Source: Basidiobolus meristosporus CBS 931.73 (Eukaryota > Fungi > Basidiobolomycota). Taken from it: a DNA stretch of 64,000 nucleotides. The stretch lies in assembly GCA_002104905.1 (NCBI GenBank), contig MCFE01000292.1:1-64000 (forward strand). The letters run 5' to 3'. Positions 1 to 53,699 of this stretch are shown here, piece after piece. Numbering within the stretch: position 1 is the stretch's first letter; each line of letters starts with the position of its first letter. The notes under the pieces are model-generated. The model had not been told where the DNA came from. It did no database searches and was given only the letters and a program-made list of their open reading frames with translations. A program made the position numbers and the translations under genes.

Positions 1-1401
1 AACTCGGTGCAATAAGTAATCGTTTCGGGATTTTAGATGTGACAGGAGTATAATTGCTGCTGCAAGAAGCATTGGGATCAACCAAGAAAGGCCCGCTATT
101 AAATTAAATTGTGGCTGATAAACGTAACCTGTGTAGATAATTGTAGCATTCTTGGCCTGTTGCAGTGTCGCCTCTCTTGTAAATTCACCAAGAGTCTCCT
201 GTAATAGCATATGTGCGGGTTTGTATCTTCCTAATGACTGAAACATATCATACTTAGACGTCGCTGCTTCTTTTACGAGATTTGTCGCATAAACAATCGG
301 ACCGTTTTCACACGTTGAATTGTTTCCGCAAGAAATCCAATTATTCAAAACGCCGATTTCTAGCTGCACCTTTTCTCGCATAAATGTAATGAGACCTTTT
401 ACACTCTTAGCAGAATAATTACTGTTTTGGTTGTACCATTCGACCTCTCCTTTGATGTTTGTGAATATTTCCCAGCGAGTGATGGAAGCATTGATGCTGC
501 ATGAATACTGAACACGGCACGATTTGGTCGTATTTACTTGCAACCGAAGATTGTCAATAGACTCCATAGTATATGGTGAGTTGTCGGCAATAGCCGAATG
601 TTGCCCGATGAACTCGAATACTGCTGGAAGTAAGCTACATTTCTGAACGGTTTCCTCTTGAACTATATCAAGCTTATCATCTCCAAATGAAACTGATGGT
701 GTGATGTCAGGAACTTCTTCTGTGGCTTCTGCTGTATATATCATGCAACTCTTTTGTAGAGGATGTACCTTCAACTTCCACCATCGCCAGTGTGCTTCCA
801 CAGGTTTGAGTTCGGCCAACGTCATTCGCAAAGGATGCTTTTTCAAGATATCATATCCAAGCAAAGGCTTTTCATTGTACACGATGTTATTCATGGAGGT
901 TAGTAGTGGGGCTCGTTGCTCAACTGATTTAAATAATGAATGTTCGCCTAAGTGGATTACTTGCGTTATTTGATAGGGAATATCTCCATATCGAACAATA
1001 TAGTGAGACCAAAGTAAACTTGTCAGTGGTAGTATGATCCCAATCAGAATTAGAGTACCAAACAAGGATGCGGTCGCTTTTTGTAATCCAAATCTATGTA
1101 TTCTCGCAAAGGATCCCAGTAACGTAAATACACCAGGAATATGTGTCATTGCAGTGGCAATTGCCCAATTATGTCCATAAAGCCGCGTTGTCTCCATTGT
1201 GCGGCGTCTGTTAATCCACCAGAGGCTCCATATAGCAGAACCAATTATTAATACGGATATAGAGCGAACACTAGTAAAAAATTGCAATACTAGCGTAGCC
1301 CATTTATCATCCAGAATGATTGACCCAAGCTGGGTTTCACATTGAGCTTCCATCAAGACATTTGCGACATCTGGGACTTTACAAGGAGTAAGGTGAACCA
1401 T
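1..1401 (-). CDS. Uncharacterised ~500 aa membrane protein family, paralogue M1 (3' end runs off the window)
   Basis: Absent from the ORF track because there is no stop in the window. Hand translation from the ATG at 1401 is open for 467 codons: MVHLTPCKVP..AQCE..WSLWW..YGHNWAIATAMTHIPG..YNEKPLL..WRWWK..KEAATSKY..SLG..ETLGEFTREA..C-terminal TM. These motifs match M2-M5. TATA-like TATAAATA lies about 33 bp upstream. Confidence 0.85.
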   Translation of the reverse strand, partial: MVHLTPCKVPDVANVLMEAQCETQLGSIILDDKWATLVLQFFTSVRSISVLIIGSAIWSLWWINRRRTMETTRLYGHNWAIATAMTHIPGVFTLLGSFARIHRFGLQKATASLFGTLILIGIILPLTSLLWSHYIVRYGDIPYQITQVIHLGEHSLFKSVEQRAPLLTSMNNIVYNEKPLLGYDILKKHPLRMTLAELKPVEAHWRWWKLKVHPLQKSCMIYTAEATEEVPDITPSVSFGDDKLDIVQEETVQKCSLLPAVFEFIGQHSAIADNSPYTMESIDNLRLQVNTTKSCRVQYSCSINASITRWEIFTNIKGEVEWYNQNSNYSAKSVKGLITFMREKVQLEIGVLNNWISCGNNSTCENGPIVYATNLVKEAATSKYDMFQSLGRYKPAHMLLQETLGEFTREATLQQAKNATIIYTGYVYQPQFNLIAGLSWLIPMLLAAAIILLSHLKSRNDYLLHRV

Positions 1402-1776
1402 TTTCAGCTGCCTTTTTGGTTGTTACTACGCTTATATTTATAGAACTTTATGTATACCAGGAATATATCGTTTGAGAACTTCTATGGCGGGGTATATTAG
1501 AGTAATACTGAATATCCTAATAGGGTACAATGATACACGGATAAATTGAATTGGTTCGTACTTGTAATCCTGTACTTAGCACATTTGCTGATTAATCTTT
1601 GTACACAAATCGGGATGTTTTATAATTATACCGCAAACTTGGCCATATAAAGAGAAAAGGGAAGCCATTACAAAAACGTTGGTGTAGCAACAAAACTATT
1701 ATTATTGAAGGTAACACTAATAGACACCGGGGGTAAAGGGGAGCAAGGTGCATCTTTAGATATGTATGAAGCTAGA

Positions 1777-3258
1777 CTATTCTTTATTATAAATGGTAGG
1801 CCATCTGTACAGTGCAAGCTCTGATTCACCTTGGGAAGGTGACTGGTAGGTGATAGCTGTTTTATCAATCAATTCCCAGGAATCTAGCATGTCTTTGACA
1901 GGCTTGTGGTGCCTCGATTTGAAGATCGAAATACCAATTGTAATTCCACTCAGGAGCATAGTTATTAGCCAGCACAAACCCATCACCCAGGAAACCATTA
2001 ATTTCCGAACGACCCCTTCAATTTTGAGCTCTACTTCTCCGAAATTCTTTGTAGCAGCCTCACGAAGAAGCTCATTAAATGTCTCAGCAAGGATTGTCGA
2101 GGGTGATCGATTTCTGCCTAGACTTCTGTATGCAAGGTACTTGGCACTTGCGGCTTGTTTCAAAATGTTGATGATTTTATACTTCCATTCTTGCTCATTC
2201 AGCCAAGAACGCATTTTTTCATCATCGATACCAATTGATTCTTGCCAATGATTTACAAACTCATTGAGATTGTTGAAGGTATTTGATGAAGAATCTATTA
2301 GCCACCCTATTTCATTGGTCGTGTTGGTGTAAATGTTGCCTTCGGTAACTCGGATTTCAATGCCACATGTGTAGCTAAGTGAGCACCGCTGACCAGTGAG
2401 GTTCGCCTCCTTGATACCAATAACGCTATCAAGCTTCAGTGGCGAATTATTGCTAATAAACTTATCATCAAAGAAAAAGTCAATTGAAGATCTTAAAATG
2501 GTGCACTCTCCTGTAAGAGTTTCTGAAACCCTCTCAGCATTATCCTCTCCAAAGCTAACGGTGAAGTTAGTCTTTGGTCTGACTGAGTGAACCACACCTT
2601 TGGCAATATTGCAGGAGCCCAATTTTGGTACAATCTCGGTGTACCACCATGCTGGCACCGGTTTGGGAGGAAAAATAGCGGCATTAGACATTCGTTTGGA
2701 ATGTTCCTTGAATATATCCCCAGATAGAAAAGGTTTTTCTGAATAGGACACTTCTCCAAAAGATGTCACTAATGCATTTCGATTTTTGATAGATGCCGTT
2801 ATATTCGATTCAATCTTTTTACTCCATCTGTAATGATATGAAACCTCAGTTTCGCCCTGGATGTAAACCCCGGAGGTAAAGCCCAGCAGTGGTAGTGCTA
2901 CTCCTGTTGCAAAGACCCAGAGAATTAACGAGAGAGAAGGCACTTTATATTTGTACATCTTCCAAAGTGAGCTGGTAGCAGTGATAATTCCTGGCATATG
3001 AGTCATTGCAGTTCCAACGACCCAGGAATTTCCATGCAGCTGTTTGACTGGACTATTCGCGTACCGACGCCACCACCATATGCTCCAAATCGCCTGCGTA
3101 GCCAACATTACCATTAACGGCCGAATTAAGGAGACCAGGTTTGAAGCAATTGAGGCCCATGCTACATCCATTGTCACCATACCAAAAGGTACCTCACATT
3201 GGGCCTGAATTGTGCCTTCGCCCGCACCAGGAACATTGCATGATGTATAATATACCAT
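1777..3258 (-). CDS. Uncharacterised membrane protein, paralogue M2 (493 aa; 2 N-terminal TM, large loop, 1 C-terminal TM)
   Basis: Intact ORF with the family motifs AQCEVPFG, WSIWWW, HGNSWVVGTAMTHMPG, YSEKPFL, KQAASAKY, ETFNELLREA, DSW and LYRWP. Confidence 0.85.
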   Translation of the reverse strand: MVYYTSCNVPGAGEGTIQAQCEVPFGMVTMDVAWASIASNLVSLIRPLMVMLATQAIWSIWWWRRYANSPVKQLHGNSWVVGTAMTHMPGIITATSSLWKMYKYKVPSLSLILWVFATGVALPLLGFTSGVYIQGETEVSYHYRWSKKIESNITASIKNRNALVTSFGEVSYSEKPFLSGDIFKEHSKRMSNAAIFPPKPVPAWWYTEIVPKLGSCNIAKGVVHSVRPKTNFTVSFGEDNAERVSETLTGECTILRSSIDFFFDDKFISNNSPLKLDSVIGIKEANLTGQRCSLSYTCGIEIRVTEGNIYTNTTNEIGWLIDSSSNTFNNLNEFVNHWQESIGIDDEKMRSWLNEQEWKYKIINILKQAASAKYLAYRSLGRNRSPSTILAETFNELLREAATKNFGEVELKIEGVVRKLMVSWVMGLCWLITMLLSGITIGISIFKSRHHKPVKDMLDSWELIDKTAITYQSPSQGESELALYRWPTIYNKE

Positions 3259-5738: not shown

Positions 5739-6697
5739 ATGGTCAAGCTTCTAGTAATAGCTCTGACGTGGTACATTGGCATTGCTCAAGCACTTAATTA
5801 CGATGAAGTTTATATGCTGCAAGACTCCGACTTATATCTTTCCCCAGACCTGTCAAGCAAAAGTCATCTTAGAATAAGTAGGGGAGCTGCTGTAAAAGTT
5901 GTGTGCCAAGTGCCGGATGCTAAACCAAGTGCCGGAAAGAAGCCAAAGTAGGTGCCTTTACATCCAAGATACCTGGACTTATATTAACACCGAAATTTAG
6001 TGTATGGAGTAAGGTTCAATATGGAGAGCTCCGTGGCTTTATACCCTATGTACGGATGGAGCATATCGAAAGCTGGCTGCCAGGGGCTCCCCAATGTAAA
6101 TGTCGGGAACCTCCCAGCGTACTCTGCGTGGACGATCGAAAGATTACACACATGGAAGCTTTGGAGTCCTTAAAGACCCATAATATTTCAATTAGTTGCA
6201 GTGAAGATACAGGATGCCCTTCACTTGAAAATATCCGTTACGAAACTCTTAACGGGTTTATTAATTTTATTGCGGCTAGCCCATGCAAAGGTGTTCAGCT
6301 TATTGGAGGGACAGAGTTGCAAGATCCCATACAAAACTTCTCCCATCATTATTCACATCAAAATGGCTTCCGTGTGGACTTCACATCAAGCCCTTGTATT
6401 GATGCATTCATCCATAATCAATTCCTTGACATTGGTTACCGAGCTTATGGAAGTCCAGATCAGCTGTACGTCGCATGTAGCGGGAATACGGTGGCATGGA
6501 AGCAAGACTATTGGGAGATGAGTGCCTACGTTAATGGTGGAAGTAAAATTGTAGCAGAAAACTCAAATTGCACTGCAAGTTCCTCAGGGGAATATCAAGC
6601 ACCAATTCAACAGGTTACAGGGACCGCCAACATTGAGGAGCATCGTCCAATTTATCTGTTCCTAAGCATAATCATGTTTTTGGGTTGGAACATATAA
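5739..6697 (+). CDS. Secreted SH3b-like + M15/DD-peptidase-like protein with GPI-like tail, S1 (301 aa, 2 exons)
   Basis: Exon 1 5739-5947, intron 5948-6000 (GTAGGT..TTTAG), exon 2 6001-6697; the splice is in frame. Signal peptide, then VKVVCQ..VWSKVQYGELRGFI..WLPGAPQC (SH3b-like), then CPSLENIR..GGTE..SHQNGFRVD (HxxxxxxD), then a hydrophobic C-terminus. Confidence 0.8.
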
Positions 6698-8682: not shown

Positions 8683-9281
8683 ATGTCCAAGGCTGGGATT
8701 TTCAAAGACAACAACCGCTCATCCACCGTAATCATTTGTGACATTGCCACCGTGAATGCGACCACAATGCCAAAGTTAGGGGAACCATGGTTTACTCCAA
8801 GTATTCCAATGGGGGCTTTGGAATTTCTATATCTGTAATTGGGCCTTTGTCTTCATTTTCAGTGCCTAAAAACACCACCATTCAGCGGGCTGTAGGAGGA
8901 TACAGTATGCACCTTGAGTCTAATGACACCTCTGAAGTTTCCATGTTCAAGCTCTAGGATGGTGAACAAACATCAGGGATTTCTAATGTGTTTATGGGTG
9001 AATTTTCGCATCGCTCCGCCATTAAATACAGAAGAGAAGACAAAAAGGTCGTGATGGCAAGCTTCTATTGCTCATCCTTCATGGTGGTTCGCAATGTGAT
9101 GAAGTATGCCTACATGTGCGACATTGCTATCATGTTAGATGGTAGCGGTTCTTCTCAGATATTGGGAGTTGACCCATCCATGGTATCGAGTAGCAATCGA
9201 AAAGGTACATACTATGGGAGCTACTCTAATGAAAGTCGTGCAATATACTCCATGGTTACCGTCAACAGTAACTCATGTTAA
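8683..9281 (+). pseudogene. Phosphodiester glycosidase family pseudogene P1 (decayed paralogue of P8)
   Basis: Starts ATGTCCAAGGCTGGGATTTTCAAAGAC like P8 at 37448. A deletion of roughly 130 bp removes the GINGGFF motif, and there is a TAG at 8955-8957. The 3' part retains SHRSAI, DIAIMLDGSGSSQ and IYSMVTV. Confidence 0.85.
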
Positions 9282-10942: not shown

Positions 10943-11785
10943 CGCAATGCATCATCTCTAGCAGAAGCAGCCATACTAGTTACCAGTACGTTATGAATAT
11001 CTGTAGCTAGAGCTATAATGCTCTAGTTAAGAGATTTAGAAATAAATACATGAATTCGATGAGAAATTTGAAAATCATCATTAAACATCTAGGCTTACGG
11101 CGCCTGTCCTGATTTCTATAGAGCTTGTTCGTAGCGGTAATAAGGGCTGATTGGTAATCCAGATGCGTACCAAGTAGAGTTAGAGTTAGCACGAAGTATA
11201 CCAAGGTATTAGTAATCATGACTGCACCAGTCAAACATGAACCAACTTGCTATCTTATACGTTAAAACCTATCTAGAGTATATAGTATTTCTCTGCTCTG
11301 TATGATCCTTAGGATATTTAATAGAAGGCTCAAAATGATATATACCTTACAGATACTCTAAACTCAACGAACCAAATTATGTCTAGTATGGCTGAAATTT
11401 AAAACCAGTTATCAACAATCGTGAGTAGCCATGTAGGAAAGCCAATATTCTCTCGCTAAAATTAGCCATTCCCGGTTAGCACTTGAGAGTAGAGGACTGA
11501 TCAGGATTTCCGAGATTTTAGTACCAGTATTTCGCTAATTCAAGTATCAATATTATCTGGCATAATCCAAGATTTGGAATCTAGGTTCCGGTTTCCATTG
11601 CGCAACTTTCTATGTAGATGACTTGAATTATCTTGTCAACGTAATATTCTCACACATGATTACAGTGCACCTAAGGGCATCTAAAATAAATATGTATACT
11701 GGTGCTGTTAAAAATCAGTTTTTTGAGCTTTATAAATGCTAAAAAGTGTTAAACGCCCCTACCTAACACCAGTTCCAGTATCAAG

Positions 11786-12052
11786 ATGCTCTGTTGTTTG
11801 TGGCTCTATCTTATTATATACGCTTATGCGGTGCTAGCTCTAGATGCTTACGACGGGATTCGTATGAAGCAAGATTCGGATTTGTTTCAGGAACCCAACC
11901 TGGTAAGTGTAAGCAACGTGAGAATTCCAAATGGAACATTGGGCAAAGCGAGCTTTGCGCACTACGCAAACGATAGCACTCCTATAGGGCGTAGGTATGT
12001 AATCAGAAATTTTGTACATATGAACTATTTTAACACAAACCCAGTATTTTGA
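11786..12052 (+). pseudogene. Truncated SH3b-M15 gene S2 (exon 1 only)
   Basis: Close paralogue of S3 exon 1 with an in-frame deletion of SIVRVLCQ that removes the conserved Cys. The donor GGTATGT is retained, but no exon 2 sequence follows before M3. Confidence 0.8.
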
Positions 12053-12552
12053 AAATAAAAGTTTTATGTATAGTTGTAAGCTTGATCTAGTAGGTATATG
12101 TGTTTCTTTATAACTTCCTATTGCAGAAGACAGCTATATTTACACGGTAATTTCAGATAGGGTCATCGTTGCATCTCACTTTCAACTGAACGCATGGGAT
12201 TTATAATCCTTTTTTACTAGTCTAATATTTCATATTCAGGGAGTGTAACCAGGTTGGTATAGGGCGTTATTTGTATCTTTCTATTTCAAGATACAGGTAT
12301 ATATCCCGGTATTATATCAAGCAAGGATACTTTTGAGAAAGGAAGGGCGAACTAGTGATCTATTTTTCTAATATCCAGGCAATATGTTTCTTGGTGCTTT
12401 ATGGCAATAAATGTTGAGTTTATTGAAAAATTATATTTCAAATTTTAATCTATTAGCACGTGAGACCCACCGCTATTGAACATCTAGGCTATATTCGATG
12501 AATTATAAAAAATAAGATGTCAGTCCTCAAAATCATTCCCTTCTGGACTCCA

Positions 12553-30690: not shown

Positions 30691-30812
30691 TGAAGACCTC
30701 AACTAGTATTACTTCTGATATGACCTGCACTACGCTAGTGGTTTCTTTCACTAGCTTTAAGTAATGACGGAGTCAAACTTTCGATTCTCCTTAGGACTAT
30801 TCGGTCTTTCTG

Positions 30813-39470: not shown

Positions 39471-40353
39471 ATGTCCTGGTGTTTATATCTTCATCTACTA
39501 TTCATAGTCACTCATACCGTAAATGGCATAGATCACTTTCAACTGGAGGAAGATTCATTCGTATACAGCACTACTAGTCTTCAAAGTCATAAAGTAACCA
39601 CCGTGAAAAAGGGTAATACTGTGAAAGTACTTTGCCAGCTTGTGAGCAACGAAAATAACATCACCCAGTGAGTATCATGATTAATTAGTAATATGGAAAT
39701 GTTGGCTAATTAATGACAGGATTTGGAGCGAAGTACAATATGGCAGTGCGCAAGGCTATATTCAATACTCCCATATGCATAAAGTGCAGGAATGGATTCC
39801 GGGCGCTCCAAATTGCGCTTGTAGAGACCCCGGGATCCCGACGCTTGGTGAAACGAAATTAACAAGTGACGAAGCTTTCAGAATTTTAACTAACGCAAAA
39901 ATCAAGATCCCGAACATATGCATTTCAAATGGTGATAATTGTGTTTCATTACAAGGCTTACGAAACGAGACTACGCAAGGTTTAGTAAGTTTTGTTAAGT
40001 CTACAAAATGCGGTATATCGCTCATCGGAGGAACTGAAGTATCAACCAGTGAGCCCAAGTACTCTTACAACGATGGATTTAAGGTGGACATGGAATTAAA
40101 CCCGTGCCTTGAAAAATACCTCACTACCAATCTCACCTTTATTGGAAACCAACAGAATGGAGATCAAGATGCACTTTATGTTGCATGCAGTTCAAACCTA
40201 TTTGTTTTAAGGAAAGATCGAATAAGTGCCGCCTTTTATATTGACGGAGGAAAGAGCCCAAAACCACTTACTGCAAATGAATCTGCAGGCAGAGCAATGA
40301 CTATTATGACTATCTACCTTTTGATTTTTGTACTAGTATATACATGGCTATGA
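39471..40353 (+). CDS. Secreted SH3b-like + M15-like protein with GPI-like tail, S4 (276 aa, 2 exons; ORF opens at 39444)
   Basis: Exon 1 ends at 39667, intron 39668-39719 (GTGAGT..GACAG), exon 2 39720-40353. Motifs VKVLCQ..IWSEVQYG..WIPGAPNC; CVSLQGLR..GGTE..SYNDGFKVD; hydrophobic tail. Confidence 0.8.
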
Positions 40354-41112
40354 ATATACTGAACAAGGATAAAATCACCATGAAATGGGCAATACAGCAT
40401 CAGAACAGATGTTTCGGAACAATTTTTAACTAACATGGAGAATGGATTATTTGTTCATTTGCGTCCTGTTGATTGCATCATTAGGAGTTCCATTTTGTCA
40501 TTACACTGATTGTTACTGGGATAAATCGAGAGATTTTCCATGTGCCATATACCTGGTCTTCGATGAAATGTCAGTTGTACAGCATAGCGCTTCAATAACT
40601 CTTAGTGTGATTTAAATTCCAGTAGCTAGCTTCGATGCTATACCTCCACGTTTCTTCGAGGGTTAACGGTGTGGTAGAAGATTTGTTTAAGCAAGCATTG
40701 GTAATCAACTTTTCCATAAATAATCTACATAATACTCAAGTCTCCTTTATTTCTGATTTATTCAAAATGCATTTTAAAAGGCTATCAGTATTATATTGCA
40801 TATCGCATTCTATCGTCTATATCCGAGCGATGATACTTTTTGTTCATGCGATGAGCATTCGTTATGGACAATAGTTTGGAGTTCGATTTTACACTACTTG
40901 GTTGTTGGACCAAGATGCATAACCGATATAGTTGAGCCATGTGTTACTAAGAATATCGCACACGAATCCTAAAGCTGAAATCTTTGTTCTTTGTATTTAT
41001 GGTGGCGCTTAGTAATGGTCCAGTGATCAAGTGTTCGGACAAATTGGTTGAGTAAGATATGATAGCTTTATTAAAGTCAAAATCCGTGAAGTCATTTTCG
41101 CAAAAATCACCG

Positions 41113-41874
41113 TTACTTGCGAACATTGGTCGAGTTTACCCAGCGGGACGGGGTGACAGTTACCATCGAGTATATGCCTGGGCCTTGTTTAAGTTGAGTT
41201 ACGTTTCCGAAACCAGCGAGGACATCCTGACCTCCGGCAGTCTTTCCTTTGATCTGGGAGGAATTCGATCCATCAAGCATGACACCAATTTTACAGCCAA
41301 TGTATGTTTTCATTAGGCTTCTCACTTGGCCAGGAGTTGCCGACATTATGCTGACAAGAATAATTTTGTTGTCTGTGCTTCTGTACCCAATTGCTGTCCT
41401 TGCTGAAGTAGAATTGGCTCCCATGGCGCCAACGCGACCCGCATGTTCACTCGCAGTGATATCATCTAGCCACTCTTTATCGGTGTACGCCTTATCCAGA
41501 TGAAGACTCAAGCCGCCTACTGCCCATTGAATACTCTCCTTCTGGTAGCCATTAAGGTTGGATATCACATCAGTAGAGAGGAACAGATTCCCGCTGGAGC
41601 TTTTGGTGCATATCATGGTTCCCCTGCTGAAATCCCCGTAGTTATGAGCATCTCCGCCGTTTCTTACGGGCGCACCTCCAGCTTTGCAGACAATTGCCAC
41701 CAGGTCCTTGGTAGGCGAGTCCCGATTGAAGTAGCCTCCATTGCAGCCATAGTAGGATGAAGCGTAGACATTAGTGTTGCCCACATCAGCGACGTCAATG
41801 GTGGGGACATCAGCAACAATTGCTGTGACACTGATGCCTTGATAGGTAAATTGGTTGACTCGAGCTTCAGACAT
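41113..41874 (-). CDS. Phosphodiester glycosidase P9 (protein identical to P7)
   Basis: Part of a ~1.07 kb block present three times (about 35545-36610, 41000-42080 and 48140-49205). Confidence 0.85.
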   Translation of the reverse strand: MSEARVNQFTYQGISVTAIVADVPTIDVADVGNTNVYASSYYGCNGGYFNRDSPTKDLVAIVCKAGGAPVRNGGDAHNYGDFSRGTMICTKSSSGNLFLSTDVISNLNGYQKESIQWAVGGLSLHLDKAYTDKEWLDDITASEHAGRVGAMGANSTSARTAIGYRSTDNKIILVSIMSATPGQVRSLMKTYIGCKIGVMLDGSNSSQIKGKTAGGQDVLAGFGNVTQLKQGPGIYSMVTVTPSRWVNSTNVRK

Positions 41875-42829
41875 GGGGATTGCGCTTGTCTAGAACACAG
41901 TTGGCCATGGCAGTATTTATAGTATGAGCAGTGACCCATACGCTACATTCACTGTATACTGTGGGGTGTTCACAATGCGGATTACAGATCCAACACCCGT
42001 ATTTGATGTAGCTACTTCCCAAGCACAAGAGGGCTTGTAGTTTGGTGTGCAAACTTGCATTGATTCGCTTTCTCATAACCACAAGATATCAAGCGGGGTC
42101 AAAGCTGGGGATACGTTGTGTTACAGTGCCTCACAATACCTTCGGAATATGATGAATAATTCAAGCTATCTACTTTTGGGATGAACGTGGATTTTGAGTA
42201 CACATATCAAAACTTGGTGATGAATGATATACATAATGTGCAATTTAAGATACGATACTCAGCATTTGATACTGATTACAGCTATTTCCAGTTTTAACAT
42301 CCATATCTCTTTTGCAACCAGATATGTCATGCAATGAAATGCATTCTATGAGGAGTTACTAGTTTCATTAAATATGTACTAGTTCAATCTAATACAAAGG
42401 ACGAATCGTGGAGCATCCTATCAAGATTAGTACAGGAATTTATTTAAAATTGCTCACCAACTCCTCCAAGCTCTTTTGGCCAACCCAAGATCGGATTAGC
42501 TGATACATCCATCTGTAATTATTGCTAGGTGGATCAGAAGTACCACAGATATAATAGTGATGGAAAACATCCTTTCTGGTATTGCTATTCCGATCCTGCT
42601 AAACAGTGGTTTTGAGATATCACCGGATGAATCATAAGCACCAACTGTATCAAAATATTTTTACATGTAATGCATACTAGTTCTAATAGTACCTCACACA
42701 AGCCATGCAATTGGGAAATCAAAACCATGGCTGAGTCACAGATATCACTGTAATGCTTAACATGCTGTTCCGTGCGCCATAATTCAAAACTTCCCAATCC
42801 CAATTTTGGGAAGTGGTATGTTGTCAGTG

Positions 42830-44500
42830 TCGAGGATAACCTCCGCATCAGGTTATCTTCACAATGTTGAACATTCAAGCCCATTTGCCTCAAACAGGCT
42901 TAGGAATCTGGTACTACCTGGCCAAGCCGTCTTACAGCCAAACCTGTAGAGCGTGATCGGGGTGGGACTTCTACCATCTACTGTCTGTATTCATTCACTC
43001 AAGATCCAGGTTTGTATCATACAGTCTGGATTTGACACCCTTGTGACACATGGTTCGATTACTTGATGCTGCGATCGCTAGATCCTAGATGTTCGCGTAT
43101 GATGAGTTCTGGTTGAAATCATGGCACTAATGTGCACATTATTCCCTTTTCATTGATGCACTAGACTGCACTCCCTGCAAAACAGGAAAGCCAATCCTGC
43201 GAATACGTACAGATGGCGTTCTCACAAATGCTGAGTTAAGCTTATTTCGAAAGCAGTCACCTGCCTACCAGCATTGCCATGCCATTGAGAAGAGTAGATA
43301 TTTCAAGGTATGTTTATTTGGGTTACGTTTTCGAGCAAGTGTCGATTAGTCAATTGCACAACGAATCATGGCTTAGGGGCCGTTTGAAGAAGCCCACTCT
43401 GTGTGCCAGCTATACAATCCGATTTGACTCTCATTCTAGCATTATCGGAGTTGGCTTCCTTGGCGGTGGCTGATTTGCCGATCTCTCTGCCTCTTGCGTT
43501 GTTGAAGAGATCCATGGATGAGGCTGCTGCACTATTTTGCCCAAACACTTCGTGAGCATCACCGACTTCCTTTGCCTGAGACTCACCAATACTAATGGTC
43601 ATCAACGCACTCCAATAGCAGTGACGGAACGCATCAGCTTTACCATTTACGTCGGAACCGACTGGGAATGTTTTATCGTTTATCAATGCCTGGGTGGTGT
43701 CCAAAGCCGTACTGGTGTCACGGGCAACCGAAATGCAGTCGAAGATGCCAACTTGGATAGCGCAGTTCCATCCTTCAGCCCACGATTTTTTATGCAACGG
43801 AGCCGCTGACGCCCAAGGAAGGGTGATTAGTGCAAGAGCGCCGATTAGAGTGAATGACTTCATTGTGTTTACTGCCGGAAGTTAGAAGAAGGCTGTGTTA
43901 GTGAGGCTTTACTCCGTTCTTCGGTCCATTTATAGCTGATAGGCAGAAAAGAATTGTCAGACAGTATCAGGATCCTCTTTATTGGTGTTGGATCGCTTAT
44001 GTTGGGCCAATATGTTCTGTGAAACGATGGCATTTGCAATGCGAACTCTGATACCCCAGAGAGGGACCCTTTGTTGACTGAGCTGCATGTCGGGTGGTAG
44101 AATTCGGAAAACATATCAGAGCTGCCCTGCAAGCTGGTGGGAAGGTCTTTCGAAGTAGTCAATTACTAGATACTGAGTCATTGCTAGTATCCATACCTTA
44201 GTTTACCCCCTTGATGTATCACAATTATGGAGATTGGTGGCAACGACTGCGTTCATTGTAGAACATTCGAAGCCTTATTGTGATGTACCGAAAATAGATT
44301 GAAGATTGTGGTCATTCATACTCTTTATAGTCAGTGTGCACTATTTGTGAAGCATCCAATGAAGGCTTTACTTGAACCGTCATCCGAGGGGGCTTTCGTG
44401 ATCTGAGATTCGGCTCCAGCCATGACCTGTATTCTACTCAGCCCTTGTTTCTTAGCTTGAGAACTTTCAGGATATAGCAAGAAATACCGGAGATGCCAAG
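42830..44500. repeat. ~1.65 kb segmental duplication carrying the DUF6973-like gene (second copy about 51516-53165)
   Basis: Near-identical direct repeat starting at gtgtcgaggataacctccgc. Confidence 0.9.
43366..43863 (-). CDS. Small secreted DUF6973-like protein D1 (165 aa)
   Basis: Signal peptide, dibasic KK, then DAFRHCYWSALM..DAHE..MDLFNNARGREIG, which matches the DUF6973 motif pattern as I recall it. Four Cys. Confidence 0.75.
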   Translation of the reverse strand: MKSFTLIGALALITLPWASAAPLHKKSWAEGWNCAIQVGIFDCISVARDTSTALDTTQALINDKTFPVGSDVNGKADAFRHCYWSALMTISIGESQAKEVGDAHEVFGQNSAAASSMDLFNNARGREIGKSATAKEANSDNARMRVKSDCIAGTQSGLLQTAPKP

Positions 44501-45661
44501 CCGTGTGTTGTGCACTATCCATAACTTGCATAGTGCTTAACCGAGGTTTCATGAGAGTACGGTATATTTGTGCCTATGATAACAATACCAATTATCTCCT
44601 ATCACTGTAGCGTACAAGCATCTGGTAGCATTGTAGTTAGTAATCTAAAAGGCCATAACTTGTTTACCTAAATAAGGGCTTTTGCAATTGTAGTATCTTC
44701 CCGAATATAATATCAAGAAATGATTGTTAGCTGTGAAGATGAAATATTCACTGTATGTGTAGAGTTCTCCAGGATATTATTCACCCACTATGATGATAAC
44801 AATAAGTCTGTTTCTTTGAAATTTTGTACTTGTTACTAAATCTACATTACATAGAATAAAGGCTACCAGTTCAGCAACTCGAACTATTTTTGTTTCTTAA
44901 TTCAATAGCAGTTTCTTATAAACATGTTTCCAGCAACGGTTGAATAGTTACAGAGCTCAAAAAATACCCCGGACTGTGTTATCAGAACTGTAGTGCTATT
45001 AGCATTTGGTTTTTAAAACACTTTCAGTTTTGCTTTCCCCTATTAGCAATTACCGAGAAGGACCTATGAAAATACTGTCACGAAATTGGAAGTGTTGCTC
45101 ATCATTGCAATTAAAATTGCAACTTCCCTACCCAATATTGATTGGTATTTCTTTGATTTCTTTGATTCAAACTGTTGATATATCTCAAGTTTCAATTAAG
45201 CAAATTGCTAAATTATTAGCTTTTGACCGGAGATTTAGTTTGTAATATATTAGCTAATACTCTGAATTAGTGAAATCCTGGAGCTTATCAAATTGATCTG
45301 ACTTCGCAAAATGACTTCAAACCATGACGTTGTTTCCGGCAGATTTTTTTAAAACACTTGTATCGTTAGTCCACAAGCTCTCCTAAAAAAAGATATACAG
45401 CATCTAAGGACTCGGAGCATGTGTCGATCACCATTGGATGTGGTTTACCATAAAAGAATGATTTAAAGCTATCTCCTTGATAAATAAGCGTTGCAAAGTC
45501 ACGCGGGAAAATTCTCACCCAATCTAAAAGCCATCATAGTTGAGCCGAATTCCTATCAAATATTGTATCACGCATTCGTGATTCTAATCAGCTTAATTAG
45601 CACAATACTCAAGTCTTCTTTATTTCTGACATATTGCGAATAATTAACAAGTAGAGATTAG

Positions 45662-47911
45662 CCCAATCGGACCATTTGGTCCGATTGTATTTAAATTATT
45701 TTGACCTCATAGCAAGGATATATGAAGTCTAAATGAAGTTTATGAAATTTCTCTGGTATACACTTTGTGCTGGTATTTTAATTTTTTCAAAATGGTTGCA
45801 AATACTTTGTCTTATATTACCTTTACTGAAGCAACTTTTGGCAAATTTTAATCGGACCAAATGGTCTAACACTTCATTGATGAATAATGGGTATGGCTTT
45901 AAGCAATTATATTTCAAACATTTAATGGCCAATCCAACTAACTGCGAAGAATTATTGAGCATTATTTGTTTTTTCATATACCACCTTCAAGTGCCTGGTA
46001 TAGCAGTCCTTACACATTGGGTGGCCAGGGTTGCAACTGCATGAAAACTCAACCTTAGTGCTTGTAACATGAGCGGCAGTACAAGTTTTGCAAGCTAATC
46101 TACGGCGCTTTGAGCCATAACCTTTACTCATCGACAGGTAAGTGTGATTTTCATCACTTCTGAGTTGCCTCTGACTACCCAAGGGCCCCTTGATGTCTGA
46201 ACCGGCCAAATTCTTACAATATTGCAAGAAATTGTATGCTAAAATATCCTTGAAAGAGAAATGAGATACGCCACACTTTTGATAAGAAAATGTACAATAA
46301 GTGCTATAGGCATTGGCGTCACAGATACCCAGGATGAAGCCGTAGAAACGCATCTCCCATCTTTCTGTACATATAACATCATGATAAGATGTCAAATTAT
46401 CTTGAAGGTTATTAGCAGCATCAACCGAACCTACAAATATAGTAAATGGAGCACATGTTGTTTCTTCAAGACAGGATTCTACAATACAAGTTGCCAACAC
46501 TGGCAACAATATTGGTGGTGGGCATACCACATGGCCAGTAGCAGCGTTTAGTCACTTGCATAATGGAATACAGACCAAGTTCAGCCAGCATCATTGTCAT
46601 ATTTGGGGATCCGAACCAAGAGTCAGCAATAACGGTACGGCCAGTACCAAACCAAGGCTTGACTAATCGCTTGACAGTGGAAGTCAACTTGGACATACCA
46701 GGATCATTGTCATATTCCTTCTGTAACCAATCACTCACTGTATCTATTCTCAGGATACAAGCAGTGTGATGGTCTGCTAAAGTCTTGAACTCCTGTCCGA
46801 TGGGATGCGGCTTCCTTGGGACTTTCTTAACATTGGGCAAACCAGCTCCTAACCATTGATTCATTGATTCGTCAATGACTAAATACTTGCAGGGCTCTAA
46901 ACAAGTTTTCATGTGCTCATTAAAGGCGTCAATAGTTGATCTAATTTGATAAAGAGCATCGATTTCTTGATGTTCTCGGGAAGGGATTTCAAGAACGTGC
47001 ATTTTCAGAATCTCTTTAAATCTTCTATACGACATATATTCCGTAAAGTCAATGTTCATTAAGAAATGAGAAGAGCCTTGCTTCCAGTAAGCTTTTTTGT
47101 CGGAATGATTGATTAATGCAATCCACATCATGTACTCGGCAAATGTAATGTCAGTCCATGGGCCAATGCTAGTTGCATAAGTATTAATCCTCCAAACGAT
47201 AGTGCGAAAGTGATCTAAAGGAAGGAAGAACAAGAAATAATCCAGCGGTGAGGCATTTCTAGCATTTTTCATATTTAACCAAGCTTTCAAGGAGGTAAAA
47301 CCATCAGCTGGCCCACTTGTACGGGAATCAATATATACTTCCCCAGTTATCCAGGTGTCTGCTGCAGTAAGGTCAATTTCATCTTCCTCCTGCTCCTCTT
47401 CTTGGATTGCATCCTCCAATAGGTCTTTAGTAACAATACTCTCGGTAGTATTAGCAGTTGCAGGTTCAATGTTTCCCAAGGTATCATTACTGTTAGTCTT
47501 GATATACTTTAAACAGTTTTGTGAAAGAGTCAATGTAATCCCCGGTACCAGATCCAAAATGACATCATATTCCAAATTGCCGTTGACTGTTGAGCGTGCA
47601 GTGGTAACTCCCTTGAAGCTCAAACCAGGTGTATTCCAGTCAAAACGCAGAGATAAAAGTCGTTTGACTTCCTTATGTTTGATAAATCGCTTGGATACTG
47701 ATACACGCACATTAACATCAAGATGTTTACTGGCAGGAGGCATGGTTTAAGTCTTAAGAAAAGATAAAACGAATATGACGAATTATCAAAACAACTCCAA
47801 AAAATAAATATTCAGATTCTTGTTTATCAGAATATGATATGAAATAAACAAAGTAAGACACCCATCCAGAAAAAACAATTGTATTTAATTAGACCATTTG
47901 GTCCAATTTGG
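45662..47911 (-). mobile_element. piggyBac DNA transposon with a disrupted transposase
   Basis: ORF 46466-47743 carries VIDESM, RKPHPIG and IADSWF (D1, D2). ORF 45952-46530, in another frame, carries GSVDAANN (D3), RWEMRF..NAY and a C-terminal CxxC..CxC..CxxC..H domain. The ends match at 16/21 as inverted repeats, and the left end begins CCC after TTAG. Confidence 0.85.
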
Positions 47912-48251
47912 ACCAGCCGAATAGCACTCCTACATCTCATGTCGCATTCTATCATTAGTTTCTCGGCGATAATATTTCCTAGTCATGCATTGCGCATTCT
48001 ATACGGACAATACTTCGGCGTCTGGTTTCACACTACTTGGTTGTTGGACCAAGATGCATAACCGATATAGTTGGGCCATGTGTTACTAAGAATATCGCAC
48101 ACGAATCCTAAAGCTGAAATCTTTGTTCTTTGTATTTATGGTGGCGCTTAGTAATGGTCCAGTGATCAAGTGTTCCGACAAATGGGTTGAGTAAGATATG
48201 ATAGCTTTATTAAAGTCAAAATCCGTGAAGTCATTTTCGCAAAAATCACCG

Positions 48252-49013
48252 TTACTTGCGAACATTGGTCGAGTTTACCCAGCGGGACGGGGTGACAGTT
48301 ACCATCGAGTATATGCCTGGGCCTTGTTTAAGTTGAGTTACGTTTCCGAAACCAGCGAGGACATCCTGACCTCCGGCAGTCTTTCCTTTGATCTGGGAGG
48401 AATTCGATCCATCAAGCATGACACCAATTTTACAGCCAATGTATGTTTTCATTAGGCTTCTCACTTGGCCAGGAGTTGCCGACATTATGCTGACAAGAAT
48501 AATTTTGTTGTCTGTGCTTCTGTACCCAATTGCTGTCCTTGCTGAAGTAGAATTGGCTCCCATGGCGCCAACGCGACCCGCATGTTCACTCACAGTGATA
48601 TCATCTAGCCACTCTTTATCGGTGTACGCCTTATCCAGATGAAGACTCAAGCCGCCTACTGCCCATTGAATACTCTCCTTCTGGTAGCCATTAAGGTTGG
48701 ATATCACATCAGTAGAGAGGAACAGATTCCCGCTGGAGCTTTTGGTGCATATCATGGTTCCCCTGCTGAAATCCCCGTAGTTATGCGCATCTCCGCCGTT
48801 TCTTACGGGCGCACCTCCAGCTTTGCAGACAATTGCCACCAGGTCCTTGGTAGGCGAGTCCCGATTGAAGTAGCCTCCATTGCAGCCATAGTAGGATGAA
48901 GCGTAGACATTAGTGTTGCCCACATCAGCGACGTCAATGGTGGGGACATCAGCAACAATTGCTGTGACACTGATGCCTTGATAGGTAAATTGGTTGACTC
49001 GAGCTTCAGACAT
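48252..49013 (-). CDS. Phosphodiester glycosidase P10 (one A-to-V change versus P7/P9)
   Basis: Third copy of the triplicated block. Confidence 0.85.
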   Translation of the reverse strand: MSEARVNQFTYQGISVTAIVADVPTIDVADVGNTNVYASSYYGCNGGYFNRDSPTKDLVAIVCKAGGAPVRNGGDAHNYGDFSRGTMICTKSSSGNLFLSTDVISNLNGYQKESIQWAVGGLSLHLDKAYTDKEWLDDITVSEHAGRVGAMGANSTSARTAIGYRSTDNKIILVSIMSATPGQVRSLMKTYIGCKIGVMLDGSNSSQIKGKTAGGQDVLAGFGNVTQLKQGPGIYSMVTVTPSRWVNSTNVRK

Positions 49014-50020
49014 GGGGATTGCGCTTGTCTAGAACACAGTTGGCCATGGCAGTATTTATAGTATGAGCAGTGACCCATACGCTACATTCACTGTATACTG
49101 TGGGGTGTTCACAATGCGGATTACAGATCCAACACCCGTATTTGATGTAGCTACTTCCCAAGCACAAGAGGGCTTGTAGTTTGGTGTGCGAACTTGCATT
49201 GATTTGATTTCGGAACTAGGAATGGGTCGTGTTACAGTGCCTTACAATATATTCAGAATATGATCAATAAATTAAGATACTACTTTTGGGAGGAGTGTGG
49301 ATTGAGTACGTATGTTACAACTTAATTGTTGGCACACATAACGTAATTCAAGATGGAATACTCGGTATTTGATGCGGCTCACAGCTATATCCAGTTTTAA
49401 CATTGATGTCTATCTTTGAAATAAGATAAGTTAAATGCTTTCTGCGTGCAGCTACTAGTTTCATGAAAAATGTACTAGAGCAATCTAATACACGGGAAGA
49501 ATCGTGTGGTGTCATTTCAAGATTGCGCAGTGGTTAGTTCGTAATTATTCATTAACTCACAATACGGTGCTACCCCAGGCTCACTTTGCCAAACCAAAAT
49601 CATAATAGTTGATATATCATCTGTAACTAAGGCTAGGTAGATCAGTGGTGTCACAGATATCATAGTGGTGGAAGACAACTTTTCTTGTCTTGCTATTCCG
49701 ATTTTGCTGGACAGTAGTTTTGAGATATCACCGGATGAATCGAGATCTGTCGCTGTTTATAAATATCTCTACATGTAGAACACTCTAGGTCTAGTGAAAT
49801 CTCATACAGGCTTTGCAATTGGCTACCTCTGGACCGAAACTGTTATGAAAGCCCCTATCACCACCCAACACTAGGGCGGTCGATTTGTGATTTTTTCTAT
49901 CACGCTAGTTCTTTCTTAAACATGAATGAGGAAAGAAACTATTTATTTGTTCCTTCAAGCGCTAGTGTTTGTTCGCGGAATCAAGAATTATCCACGATAG
50001 ATTCACCGAACTAAACTTGT

Positions 50021-50509
50021 TCAAGAGATGGTTTGCAGCATACCTTTCCGGGCTGCATCAAGACAGCCATCCATAGCAAGAGCATTCGCGCTTTTTGAGG
50101 TTTTGTAAAGATTCCCGATCTCTCGACCTTGAGCATTGTTGAATAGGTCCATTTTTGACTCAGCCGACAGGTTATTGCCATTGTCCTCATGACTGTCTGC
50201 CACTTTCTGAGCTTGATCTGCGCCGAATCGAATGGTCATCAGGGCATTCCAGTAGCAGTGACGGAAAGCATCCCCTTTGCCATAGTGGAGAGATGCCGAG
50301 GAGAAGTATCCCTTTGGGGCGAGAGCCTGAGCTGTCTCTTAAGCCGTGTCTGCATCTTCCTTAGCATCCAAGCAGTCAAGAGGTCCAATAAGGAATACAC
50401 AAGCCACCTTCTCTGATAAGGATGCATTATTTTGTCTCTTGAGCGGCACAGCAAGCGAGATAGCAGGAAGAAGCAGAGTTGCAACACCGAAGATCTGAGC
50501 AAGTTTCAT
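50021..50509 (-). pseudogene. Diverged DUF6973-like paralogue D2 with one premature stop
   Basis: MKLAQIFGVATLLLPAISLAVPLKR..DADTA*ETAQAL..GDAFRHCYWNALM..SHE..MDLFNNAQGREIG. The single TAA is codon 57 (50339-50341); the frame is otherwise intact over 163 codons. Confidence 0.8.
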
Positions 50510-52051
50510 TGTAACGGGGTGGTAATTGAATTATGGCACAAACAGACTTGAAACCCTTTTATAAATACCGTTGGCGTAAGGATGCGTGCTACATTTACCA
50601 TCAACCTGAATGCAGAGTACTGCCAAAGAAGTTGTGATCCGTGGAAGTATTCTCATAATCAGTTCCATGTTGTTTCAACTCAATCTACCCTGCCTTTGCG
50701 AAACTTTGCGTAATCTGGAATACAACAATAACCATGAGAAATGCTAAGCCATGTACAACACTATCATGGGCGGATAGCATACCTAACAGGTCTTTCTGGT
50801 GGCTGTTCCAAGCGATTACTGCCGTTCCAAGTTATATATATTGTGGTGTACACCAGACCCAAATACGCATTTTGGCTACTATGTACAATTGTAAATTCTA
50901 GAAATGCCAAGTCGAGTGATACTCTATCTGGTTGCACTCTCTAACGAAATAATTCGAGCACTGGTTGATGGCATTGTGTAGGGTATTTTAGGCTACGTTA
51001 CAGAGTTCTCTTATTGAGTTGGAGGTTTGAGTGCATAAATTCAGATTGGGGAATGCAGTAAACAAGTATTCATAGCTGCAAAGTCTCACACATTGCTTGC
51101 TTTTTTCCAAGGATCAAGATTAGAAATCGTAGATGTCGGGTATTTCGATCACGACTCTGATACTAGAGATCTGTTGCTATCTGGGATCCATCCATCATGG
51201 TGAGAATCTCAACCGCAGTTCACAGTGTATACGAAATAGCAACCTCTATATCAAGATACCAGGTATCTCGATTACTGGCTGTTCATCTGTGTGGTGTATA
51301 ACCTAAAACTAGTGCACCAGGCACAGGTTATGCAGACTAATCCAACAGGAAGTTGTCCAAGATTGTCCACAATCACCGTTAATAGTTGCAATCGGGCCAT
51401 TCTTCACAAGCACCCCCGAGCGGCAAAAACTACCGTTGTGAATAACAAGCAATTTCGTGCGCCTTAACGCCAATTGTTCTCAATCTTAGTTTTAGGACGG
51501 GGTATGCTGTTAGTGTCGAGGATAACCTCCGCATCAGGTTATTTTCACAATGTTGAACATTCAAGCCCATTTGCCTCAAACAGGCTTAGGAATCTGGTAC
51601 TACCTGGCCAAGCCGTCTTACAGCCAAACCTGTAGAGCGTGATCGGGGTGGGACTTCTACCATCTACTGTCTGTATTCATTCACTCAAGATCCAGGTTTG
51701 TATCATACAGTCTGGATTTGACACCCTTGTGACACATGATTCGATTACTTGATGCTGCGATCGCTAGATCCTAGATGTTCGCGTATGATGAGTTCTGGTT
51801 GAAATCATGGCACTAATGTGCACATTATTCCCTTTTCATTGATGCACTAGACTGCACTCCCTACAAAACAGGAAAGCCAATCCTGCGAATACGTACAGAT
51901 GGCGTTCTCACAAATGCTGAGTTAAGCTTATTTCGAAAGCAGTCACCTGCCTACCAGCATTGCCATGCCATTGAGAAGAGTAGATATTTCAAGGTATGTT
52001 TATTTGGGTTACGTTTTCGAGCAAGTGTCGATTAGTCAATTGCACAACGAA

Positions 52052-52549
52052 TCATGGCTTAGGGGCCGTTTGAAGAAGCCCACTCTGTGTGCCAGCTATA
52101 CAATCCGATTTGACTCTCATTCTAGCATTATCGGAGTTGGCTTCCTTGGTGGTGGCTGATTTGCCGATCTCTCTGCCTCTTGCGTTGTTGAAGAGATCCA
52201 TGGATGAGGCTGCTGCACTATTTTGCCCAAACACTTCGTGAGCATCACCGACTTCCTTTGCCTGAGACTCACCAATACTAATGGTCATCAACGCACTCCA
52301 ATAGCAGTGACGGAACGCATCAGCTTTACCATTTACGTCGGAACCGACTGGGAATGTTTTATCGTTTATCAATGCCTGGGTGGTGTCCAAAGCCGTACTG
52401 GTGTCACGGGCAACCGAAATGCAGTCGAAGATGCCAACTTGGACAGCGCAGTTCCATCCTTCAGCCCACGATTTTTTATGCAACGGAGCCGCTGACGCCC
52501 AAGGAAGGGTGATTAGTGCAAGAGCGCCGATTAGAGTGAATGACTTCAT
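52052..52549 (-). CDS. Small secreted DUF6973-like protein D3 (2 aa differences from D1)
   Basis: Duplicate of D1. Confidence 0.75.
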   Translation of the reverse strand: MKSFTLIGALALITLPWASAAPLHKKSWAEGWNCAVQVGIFDCISVARDTSTALDTTQALINDKTFPVGSDVNGKADAFRHCYWSALMTISIGESQAKEVGDAHEVFGQNSAAASSMDLFNNARGREIGKSATTKEANSDNARMRVKSDCIAGTQSGLLQTAPKP

Positions 52550-53699
52550 TGTGTTTACTGCCGGAAGTTAGAAGAAGGCTGTGTTAGTGAGGCTTTACTC
52601 CGTTCTTCGGTCCATTTATAGCTGATAGGCAGAAAAGAATTGTCAGACAGTATCAGGATCCTCTTTATTGGTGTTGGATCGCTTATGTTGGGCCAATATG
52701 TTCTGTGAAACGATGGCATTTGCAATGCGAACTCTGATACCCCAGAGAGGGACCCTTTGTTGACTGAGCTGCATGTCGGGTGGCAGAATTCGGAAAACAT
52801 ATCAGAGCTGCTCTGCGAGCTGGTGGGAAGGTCTTTCGAAGTAGTCAATTACTAGATACTGAGTCATTGCTAGTATCCATACCTTAGTTTACCCCCTTGA
52901 TGTATCACAATTATGGAGATTGGTGGCAACGACTGCGTTCATTGTAGAACATTCGAAGCCTTATTGTGATGTACCGAAAATAGATTGAAGATTGTGGTCA
53001 TTCATACTCTTTATAGTCAGTGTGCACTATTTGTGAAGCATCCAATGAAGGCTTTACTTGAACCGTCATCCGAGGGGACTTTCGTGATCTGAGATTCGGC
53101 TCCAGCCATGACCTGTATTCTACTCAACCCTTGTTTCTTATCTTGAGAACTTCAGGATATATCAAGCAAGACGAGTGAGTTCAAGCTGTGTGCTACGCCT
53201 TTATGGGTAAATATTGTACATTCATGGCTTACGTAGTGGTTGACCTAAGTTTTATGAGTGTGGCATATTTTTGCCTGTGACCACGATACCAATTCTACCA
53301 TTGTAGCGTGTTCACATCAGGATTCGGAAGTAGAATTCGTCGCATCACGTCCTAGCTATCCTGATGGCATCGCTTGGCTTGAGCCTGTTCCATCAGCAAA
53401 TGGGCTCCCCTGAGAATATCTCCGGGAGATCCAATGCGAAGATCCGCCCTATTTCTAACTTGGCCAGCATATCTTCGAGTGGCGGAGGACATCGATCCCT
53501 CTTATTTTCAGTATGCCGCTAAATTTCACTTCTGCTCAGAATAGCACTGTCACAATGCATGCTAATTTCGTATCGCAAAATATTCAACATTAGTTGTACA
53601 ACTTCTATTTAAGTCTTCACAGTAACCTAGCAGTGGGGCTATTAATAACAACGCTATCTTTCCAGATTTCTCAGATGTAGACTAATATTTGGGGTCATT

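Follow-up and report, generated by a model that had tools for sequence, protein, structure and literature searches.

A genus-restricted Basidiobolus gene cluster that links NAGPA-like and AAA proteins with orphan membrane and surface families and adjoins genes of the Min-Wnt toxin family

The first 53.3 kilobases (kb) of a contig from the fungus Basidiobolus meristosporus CBS 931.73 are given over to a single multigene cluster, in which members of just five protein families—here termed M, S, P, A, and D—lie interleaved and repeatedly duplicated. The window analyzed is the 64-kb stretch at positions 1–64000 of contig MCFE01000292.1 (102,104 bp; assembly GCA_002104905.1). M and S are orphan families predicted to reside in the membrane and at the cell surface, P comprises NAGPA-like proteins, A encodes a BCS1-like AAA ATPase, and D belongs to the DUF6973, or Min-Wnt Lipocone, family of bacterial toxins. 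The locus is a genus-restricted Basidiobolus multigene cluster that evolves by birth and death. What the present work demonstrates is its anatomy, the linkage of S, M, P, and A to one another, and, firmly for D and moderately for P, their descent from bacterial families; the function considered below, an envelope-directed role in conflict with bacteria, is put forward tentatively.

Mapping of the families by tblastn of representatives against the window, together with self-BLASTN and the public gene calls, assigned approximately 25 genes, fragments, and relics between 1 and 53.3 kb to these five families exclusively. M contributes four intact genes and a fifth truncated where the contig stops; S, three two-exon genes and an exon-1 relic; P, seven intact genes and two fragments; A, a single intact open reading frame (ORF) of 634 residues and three fragments; and D, two intact genes and a third with a single in-frame stop. 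Apart from these, the first 53.3 kb encode nothing but a piggyBac-like transposase. The same three approaches found no housekeeping gene within 1–53.3 kb, so that the initial annotation's account of a 53-kb locus of about 25 interleaved, co-duplicated members of five families is borne out. No tRNAs or tandem repeats were found in the 64-kb window, and GC content is even across it at approximately 40%. Public annotation under-calls several of these genes, with a 174-residue model for the 634-residue A1 ORF, a 70-residue model for the 165-residue D1, and, for D2, a model of the part after the stop codon alone.

Linkage of S, M, P, and A is old and extends beyond this locus. Three old paralogous blocks, with synonymous divergence (dS) of 0.6–2.5, contain these four families, which are also present in a second species, B. 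ranarum. In B. meristosporus, the 15.7-kb locus L004 carries an A fragment together with M2-like, S1-like, M1-like, P3-like, S2-like, and S3-like copies, while the 10.6-kb locus L029 carries an S3-like copy, an M gene, a P1-like copy, and a full-length A; each of the L004 and L029 copies is 44–79% identical in protein sequence to one particular subfamily of the window. In B. ranarum, whose contigs are just 1.5–3 kb long, an S1-type gene lies approximately 450 bp upstream of an M1-type gene (L005), and an S2-type gene adjoins a P4-type gene (L030, with P at L030:1636-2421). The subfamilies are, moreover, paired one-to-one. S1 followed by M1 is an order common to the window (23.4–26.3 kb), L004, and B. 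ranarum L005, and a relic of exon 1 persists upstream of M1 at 11.6–12.0 kb, giving three S1–M1 pairs plus the relic; S2 is paired with P4 in both species. Those copies of M that were found are located in such clusters or on short B. ranarum fragments of 1–3 kb. Among old copies, pairwise ratios of nonsynonymous to synonymous substitution rates (dN/dS) are 0.09–0.25 for M, S, P, and A, indicating purifying selection throughout the tested pairs. The old paralogous blocks, the second species, and these ratios together show S, M, P, and A to be a conserved module under selection.

Overlying this old association are recent segmental duplications at 87–99.5% DNA identity, resolved by self-BLASTN as a pair of blocks at 12458–14217 and 24698–26458 (97%), a triplet at 35513–36602, 40983–42095, and 48122–49211 (98.6%), and a second pair at 42758–44613 and 51443–53309 (95%). 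The flanks of A are duplicated at 89–99.5% identity, and a P3-D unit is present twice, at 40799–44613 and 47938–53309. The transposase sits exactly between the two copies of this unit (45952–47743, minus strand; DDE_Tnp_1_7, 114 bits in Pfam) and is split into two overlapping ORFs. Older paralogues in the window, by comparison, share just 27–52% protein identity. The recent duplications account for part of the pattern of co-occurrence, the association of the families itself being older.

The bacterial contribution to the cluster is clearest for D. Its members are 165-residue proteins with a signal peptide and match PF22322 (DUF6973) at 82.3 bits, well above the cut-off of 27; a profile of D and its bacterial homologues matches BteO (PDB 9UU0) at E=1e-14 and Wnt5a at E=0.026. 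The three copies lie on the minus strand at the right edge of the cluster: D1 (43366–43863), of whose 165 residues the GenBank entry ORX92093.1 spans only 70; D2 (50021–50509), a diverged copy 42–44% identical to D1 that is interrupted by an in-frame stop at 50339–50341, with GenBank ORX92095.1 representing the part after the stop; and D3 (52052–52549), which is intact and, by tblastn and self-BLASTN, 99% identical to D1. The D2 remnant, like D1 and D3, retains the motifs AFRH, AHE, and D-L-F-N-N-x-x-G-R; the His, Glu, Asp, Asn, and Gly residues of these motifs do not vary among the bacterial homologues, and the motifs match the H2 His, the H3 polar pair, and the H4 Asp with the sNxxGR signature by which the SAA-Wnt clade has been defined (PMC12419801). 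A single-protein genome scan identified domains 37–51% identical to D in five distant bacterial genera, as the C-terminal tip of a 1560-residue RHS/YD protein in Cohnella, at an RHS-type C-terminus in a Bifidobacterium metagenome-assembled genome, in secreted or lipoprotein form in Microbacterium and Bdellovibrio, and in one further protein from Niveispirillum. The Pfam score, signal peptide, BteO match, and RHS tips uphold the earlier call of D as a secreted DUF6973 protein, and by sequence D clearly descends from a bacterial toxin family that acts on the cell envelope.

The Min-Wnt table of Burroughs and Aravind includes both ORX92093.1 and ORX92095.1, the products called from parts of D1 and D2; these authors describe Min-Wnt toxins as having been transferred to fungi and expanded there, probably in antibacterial immunity (eLife 2025, PMC12419801). 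This portion of the finding has therefore already been published, without its genomic neighborhood. D shares with Min-Wnt proteins and BteO the domain and its conserved positions, and has the stand-alone secreted form described for fungal Min-Wnt proteins, the bacterial homologues being RHS or lipoprotein toxin tips. It differs in lying beside a NAGPA gene within a larger fungal cluster, with no immunity gene evident. Two modes of action are candidates for D: Lipocones are predicted to be enzymes that target lipid-linked wall precursors (PMC12419801), whereas BteO, a type VI secretion system (T6SS) effector of Bacteroides fragilis, is reported to act non-enzymatically by binding the C-domains of OmpA (PNAS 2025, PMC12541434).

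P proteins are stand-alone proteins of approximately 250–325 residues with NGG-F, ARTAIG, and DGGGS-type motifs. Their assignment to NAGPA/DUF2233 in the initial annotation stands: six of the seven intact copies match PF09992 (NAGPA) at 27.8–42.3 bits against a cut-off of 25, the seventh being a near-identical duplicate that was left unscanned, and the family profile matches the solved NAGPA structure 6pku at E=2.4e-4, compared with E=1.3 for the Bacteroides DUF2233 structure 3ohg. DGGGS, a loop reported to be essential in human NAGPA for substrate recognition and catalysis (PMC13474241), is intact in P2 (17137–18114, minus strand; 27.8 bits), P5 (31518–32264, minus; 42.3 bits), P4 (37448–38227, plus; 31.3 bits), and the B. 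ranarum protein P0014; the B. ranarum counterpart of P4 is 69% identical to it. The loop reads DGGAS in P1 (10154–10942, plus; 31.9 bits) and DGSNS in P3 (35643–36404, minus; 29.8 bits), of which P3' (41113–41874, minus) is an exact protein copy within the 98.6% duplicated block and P3'' (48252–49013, minus) a copy differing by one residue. The two fragments are a P4-like pseudogene piece (8683–9275, plus; 63% identity over residues 65–238, with DNA similarity to 37639–38150), which is out of register with its own N-terminal piece, and the C-terminal 94 residues of a P3-like copy (30404–30757, minus; 61% to P3 by tblastn). As a separate observation, P2, P4, and the B. ranarum P4-like protein (L030:1636-2421) end in a basic stretch and a terminal cysteine (…GRC, …RTC, and …RSC, respectively); this conserved cysteine could be a signal for lipidation or membrane attachment, the sequences not fitting a CaaX box.

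Relatives of P were sought among bacterial and metagenomic sequences. While k-mer protein searches with S, M, and P returned Basidiobolus proteins only, a pattern scan of metagenome contigs with P recovered 17 loci. Two near-identical P-like loci lie on a bacterial contig of 62% GC alongside genes read as TypA, ThiI, and cysteine desulfurase. Their gene, of 50% GC, is 35% identical over the full length and has no signal peptide. The closest bacterial relative (L012:5866-6714; 35% identity), as a gene of 50% GC on a contig of 62% GC, may itself be foreign to its bacterium; it is flanked by genes for an apparent TerC-like membrane protein and a small lipoprotein. Two short contigs to which no taxon is assigned, L014 and L015, carry P-like genes at 30–35% identity. 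A more distant group from gut Bacillota (L016–L028, human-gut metagenome), at 24–26% identity, includes clusters of two or three signal-less P-like paralogues (e.g. L017:1465-8698), one of them fused to a ricin-type lectin, with Phage_holin_4_1, RCC1-repeat proteins, and a sigma factor as neighbors; these may represent a holin-dependent module that is wall-active or bacteriocin-like. P itself was not found in phages or viral contigs, and neither P nor D had a match in PHROGs.

Maximum-likelihood analysis, with the gut group as root, gathers the nine fungal P proteins into one clade (support 77/72) beside a bacterial sequence and inside a metagenomic grade. This topology favors a bacterial origin of P followed by expansion in the fungus; the support for that origin is moderate and not decisive, because the tree excludes eukaryotic NAGPA sequences and two of its outgroups have no assigned taxon. 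Compared with the animal uncovering enzyme, P shares the NAGPA core and motifs but lacks the signal peptide, the propeptide, and the EGF stalk, and it stands closer to the small signal-less bacterial and metagenomic subfamily than to either animal NAGPA or Bacteroides DUF2233.

The remaining three families are of different character. A1 (19575–21479, plus strand) is an intact ORF whose AAA module matches PF00004 at 64 bits, confirming the AAA ATPase first annotated here; its top five distinct PDB sequences are all BCS1 (E=1e-32 to 3e-29), ahead of Cdc48/p97. A1 has one hydrophobic segment, at residues 94–127, and A is predicted to be a membrane-anchored, BCS1-like AAA ATPase. BCS1 moves folded protein across a membrane. 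The likeness of A to BCS1 lies in the AAA module and N-terminal membrane anchor; within residues 1–342, in contrast, no BCS1 N-terminal domain (PF08740) was detected, just a chance-level Pfam match, the N-terminal region of 310 residues is unrelated, and A is a clustered, lineage-specific paralogue rather than a housekeeping protein. The paralogue on L029 is 79% identical with a dN/dS of 0.12 and, unlike the truncated public model of A1, is intact. Three fragments in the window match residues 39–140 (14526–14807, plus; 38%), 317–364 (30774–30917, minus; 56%), and 500–634 (33337–33744, plus; 95%) of A1, the last of these by self-BLASTN as well as tblastn.

M proteins comprise approximately 500 residues with three hydrophobic segments and invariant cysteines, in conserved pairs, in regions predicted to face outward. 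The copies are M4 (1–1401, minus strand; 466 residues annotated, its 3' end cut by the contig end, 42% identical to M2 by tblastn), M3 (1777–3258, minus; 493 residues), M1 (12517–14034, plus; 505 residues), its recent duplicate M1' (24758–26275, plus; 97% protein identity), and M2 (27171–28730, minus; 519 residues annotated); gene calls and the M alignment bear out M4 and M2. No Pfam family was matched by M, and a profile of eight members searched against 1.84 billion representative proteins returned six, all from two Basidiobolus species. A contig scan found no relatives in viral contigs, and an AlphaFold2 (AF2) model of M1, with a predicted local distance difference test (pLDDT) score of 69, matched no solved fold in the PDB significantly; the AF2 predictions for both M and S were shallow, at 7–8 sequences each. 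The sole BFVD match in Foldseek, a 569-residue protein of Red algae totivirus 1 (E=3.4e-4 over 529 columns), superimposes with a template-modeling score of 0.16 and a root-mean-square deviation of 19; it is not trusted as a relative and is probably meaningless. M is best described as a genus-restricted orphan, a predicted three-pass, glycoprotein-like membrane protein. The proposal that the island was horizontally seeded from bacteria is supported for D and moderately for P, and does not extend to M and S, because neither the k-mer protein searches nor, for M, the profile search gave relatives outside Basidiobolus.

S proteins, of approximately 300 residues, consist of a signal peptide, a weakly SH3-like N-terminal region, an orphan cysteine-rich domain, and a short hydrophobic tail that may be a glycosylphosphatidylinositol (GPI) signal or a membrane anchor; they are probably secreted and surface-anchored. 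A spliceosomal GT-AG intron of 52–53 bp splits the SH3-like region. All three genes are on the plus strand, as supported by splice sites and alignment: S3 (5739–6697, intron 5948–6000; 301 residues, also a public gene call), S1 (23420–24371, intron 23653–23704), which lies 386 bp upstream of M1', and S2 (39471–40353, intron 39668–39719). The relic (11647–12033, plus) retains an S1-type exon 1 and its upstream region just upstream of M1, at 81.6% DNA identity to 23283–23691. In the paralogous block L004, too, an S3-like copy with an in-frame stop (L004:14952-15677) runs off the contig end, a further instance of pseudogenization.

Two claims of the initial annotation concern S. The first, an SH3b domain, finds weak SH3-like signals, all of them sub-threshold. 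The Pfam SH3_3 match on P0007:20-105 reaches E=0.032 and 14.9 bits (cut-off 27), the SH3b model being PF08239; profile matches to PDB SH3 domains are weak, at E=0.006–0.7; a precomputed SH3_3 match to the B. ranarum S2-like protein is graded weak; and the AF2 model of S, with a pLDDT of 52, is of low confidence in the SH3-like region. The second, an M15-type peptidase, goes back to one short string, H-x2-G-x3-D, which resembles the M15 pattern S-x-H-x-x-G-x-A-x-D and is present in some copies; the likeness of S to M15/LAS enzymes (VanX/DdpX, MepK, and the hedgehog N-domain) is limited to this string. In an alignment of eight S members, both S2-type copies have Tyr in place of its His and the B. 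ranarum S2-like copy has Asn in place of its Asp; there is no conserved His further downstream, and the invariant residues of the region are just Y, S, G, and F. Pfam gave no M15/LAS match up to E=10 and two PDB profile searches gave none, hhalign returned a probability of 0.1% against Escherichia coli DdpX and MepK, and tblastn found no match to phage M15 endolysins; Foldseek yielded nothing significant for the AF2 model of S, with matches to the hedgehog N-domain ShhN at E of approximately 0.4 that are weak and come from a low-confidence model. With no homology detected and the zinc ligands (H-x6-D plus a downstream His) not conserved, the reading of S as an M15/LAS peptidase is rejected as unsupported.

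As to what the cluster does, the most likely function, held with rather less than even confidence, is that it forms part of a gut fungus's equipment for conflict with bacteria, directed at their envelopes. We rate it most likely because Basidiobolus dwells in the guts of amphibians and reptiles among dense bacteria, with bacterial gene acquisitions already noted (PMC7466969); because D carries a signal peptide and intact conserved residues; and because conflict proteins of Bacillota fuse NAGPA, prok-TelC Lipocone, and cell-wall-binding domains (PMC12419801). Those fusions resemble the present cluster in combining an enzyme of NAGPA type with a Lipocone-type toxin and a module for wall binding, but do so in one secreted bacterial polypeptide; in the fungus each part has its own gene, the toxin is Min-Wnt rather than TelC, and P and D are adjacent at one locus. 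On this proposal D would be released via its signal peptide and attack the envelope, at lipid-linked wall precursors or at OmpA-type peptidoglycan-binding proteins; P would cleave the phosphodiester-linked sugars of wall polymers; S would serve as a cell-wall-binding or surface-tethering module; and M and the BCS1-like A might form the apparatus in the membrane by which the signal-less P is positioned or exported. The last step is the more speculative, and is prompted by the lack of a signal peptide in P as in its bacterial relatives, some of them having a holin gene as neighbor; export by M and A would parallel both that holin beside the P-like genes of Bacillota and the transport of folded protein by BCS1. 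In its full form—S, M, P, and A as a fungal system for delivering a wall hydrolase of bacterial type, in which M and A export P and S tethers to peptidoglycan, acting together with Min-Wnt toxins as an antibacterial immune locus in the vertebrate gut—the scheme is a long shot.

Several observations weigh against an antibacterial role of the cluster. No P protein has an N-terminal hydrophobic segment or signal peptide, and all are predicted to be cytosolic, so an extracellular role requires an export route; the closest bacterial relatives likewise have no signal peptide. The DGGGS motif is altered in P1 and in the P3 copies, and the fungal P clade is weakly supported, with L014 and L015 lacking a taxon. 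Peptidoglycan binding by S rests on sub-threshold SH3 matches, and M and S are both orphan families. The site of action of BteO is the periplasm, which it reaches by T6SS injection, whereas a free fungal D would first need to get across the outer membrane. Gene-wide dN/dS is low, with no overall signal of an arms race. Finally, D is absent from L004 and L029, was likewise not found on the B. ranarum contigs L005 and L030, and is linked with the other families at this locus only, at its right edge, through one recently duplicated P3-D block, and hidden Markov models of M, S, P, and D searched against all ORFs of 22 bacterial and metagenomic loci revealed no P-D, P-S, or P-M linkage, and no second family adjoining any P or D homologue. 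Overall, the initial interpretation is upheld in part. That the five families form one system is a tentative proposal; co-localization beyond this locus is seen for S, M, P, and A, which are kept together on L004 and L029 and as S-M and S-P pairs in B. ranarum, and not for D, which joins at one edge.

These last points bear on the best-surviving rival, under which the families would be co-duplicated neighbors without common function in a transposon-rich, fast-evolving region, with D adjacent by chance and with separate roles for the others, such as organelle protein handling for A, a place at the fungal surface for S and M, and glycan metabolism for P. We consider this rather unlikely, though several points favor it: the extensive segmental duplications of recent date each took more than one gene with them, transposable elements lie inside and beside the cluster, many copies are fragments, and both the single block that links D and the lack of linkage in bacteria are as it would predict. 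What tells against it is the recurrence of the four families in old blocks and in a second species with their subfamilies paired one-to-one, and the location of those M copies that were found in such clusters or on short B. ranarum fragments.

A decidedly doubtful rival turns the system upon the fungus itself, as machinery for surface remodeling or recognition in which P acts on phosphodiester-linked glycans or on dolichol- or GPI-type intermediates, in the service of development, adhesion, or self/non-self discrimination. The predicted cytosolic location of P accords with it, as does the resemblance of S to a fungal GPI-type wall protein, given its signal peptide, hydrophobic tail, many sequons, and, in B. 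ranarum, a Ser/Thr-rich linker; M and S are fungal inventions, and diversified multi-copy surface families are typical of recognition systems. However, the nearest relatives of P are bacterial or metagenomic and in some instances holin-associated, D belongs to a bacterial toxin family aimed at the bacterial envelope, and we know of no fungal wall pathway with NAGPA-type enzymes. Bacterial contamination or mis-assembly has next to no probability and is ruled out: P and D do have bacterial relatives and most of the genes are intronless, but the S genes carry 52–53 bp GT-AG introns, a GC content of approximately 40% is common to the genes, the eukaryotic piggyBac, and a Harbinger element, the independently assembled B. 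ranarum genome contains these families too, and identity to bacterial proteins is just 24–51%.

To the right of the cluster, the stretch from 53.3 to 64 kb is transposon-rich, with no genes called between 52.5 and 59 kb, where the gene table ends. A Harbinger/PIF DDE_Tnp_4 transposase ORF lies at 58063–58581 on the minus strand, a pair of repeats at 56836–57166 and 62284–62611 shares 74% identity, and AT skew is strongly negative at 54–58 kb.

The "dae" amidases of ticks and mites derive from T6SS Tae effectors, and an antibacterial Basidiobolus cluster would fit the same theme, the domestication of bacterial antibacterial effectors by eukaryotes. In both instances a eukaryote has kept an interbacterial toxin domain, equipped it with a signal peptide, and multiplied its genes; the enzyme class differs, and D lies in a multi-family cluster for which antibacterial action is predicted. 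The kinds of protein assembled here are for the most part known already—the D family, NAGPA, BCS1-like AAA proteins, and SH3-like modules—with M and the C-terminal domain of S as orphans. A literature search found no mention of DUF6973, and for DUF2233 with fungi none of Basidiobolus; to all appearances, neither the S-M-P-A module nor its joining to Min-Wnt genes has been described before. The statement in the initial annotation that no such locus had been described is accordingly fair for the combination and not for D, two genes of which have been published as Min-Wnt Lipocone toxins.

If the proposed function is correct, the locus would be the first to show in what genomic surroundings fungal Min-Wnt toxins and signal-less NAGPA-like enzymes occur, with two envelope-active families of bacterial derivation joined to three membrane or surface families specific to the fungus. 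It would then offer a concrete, testable case of a fungus assembling antibacterial equipment from transferred toxin parts. Even should the families prove functionally unrelated, the cluster would still be a clean example of the block-wise birth-and-death evolution of orphan genes.

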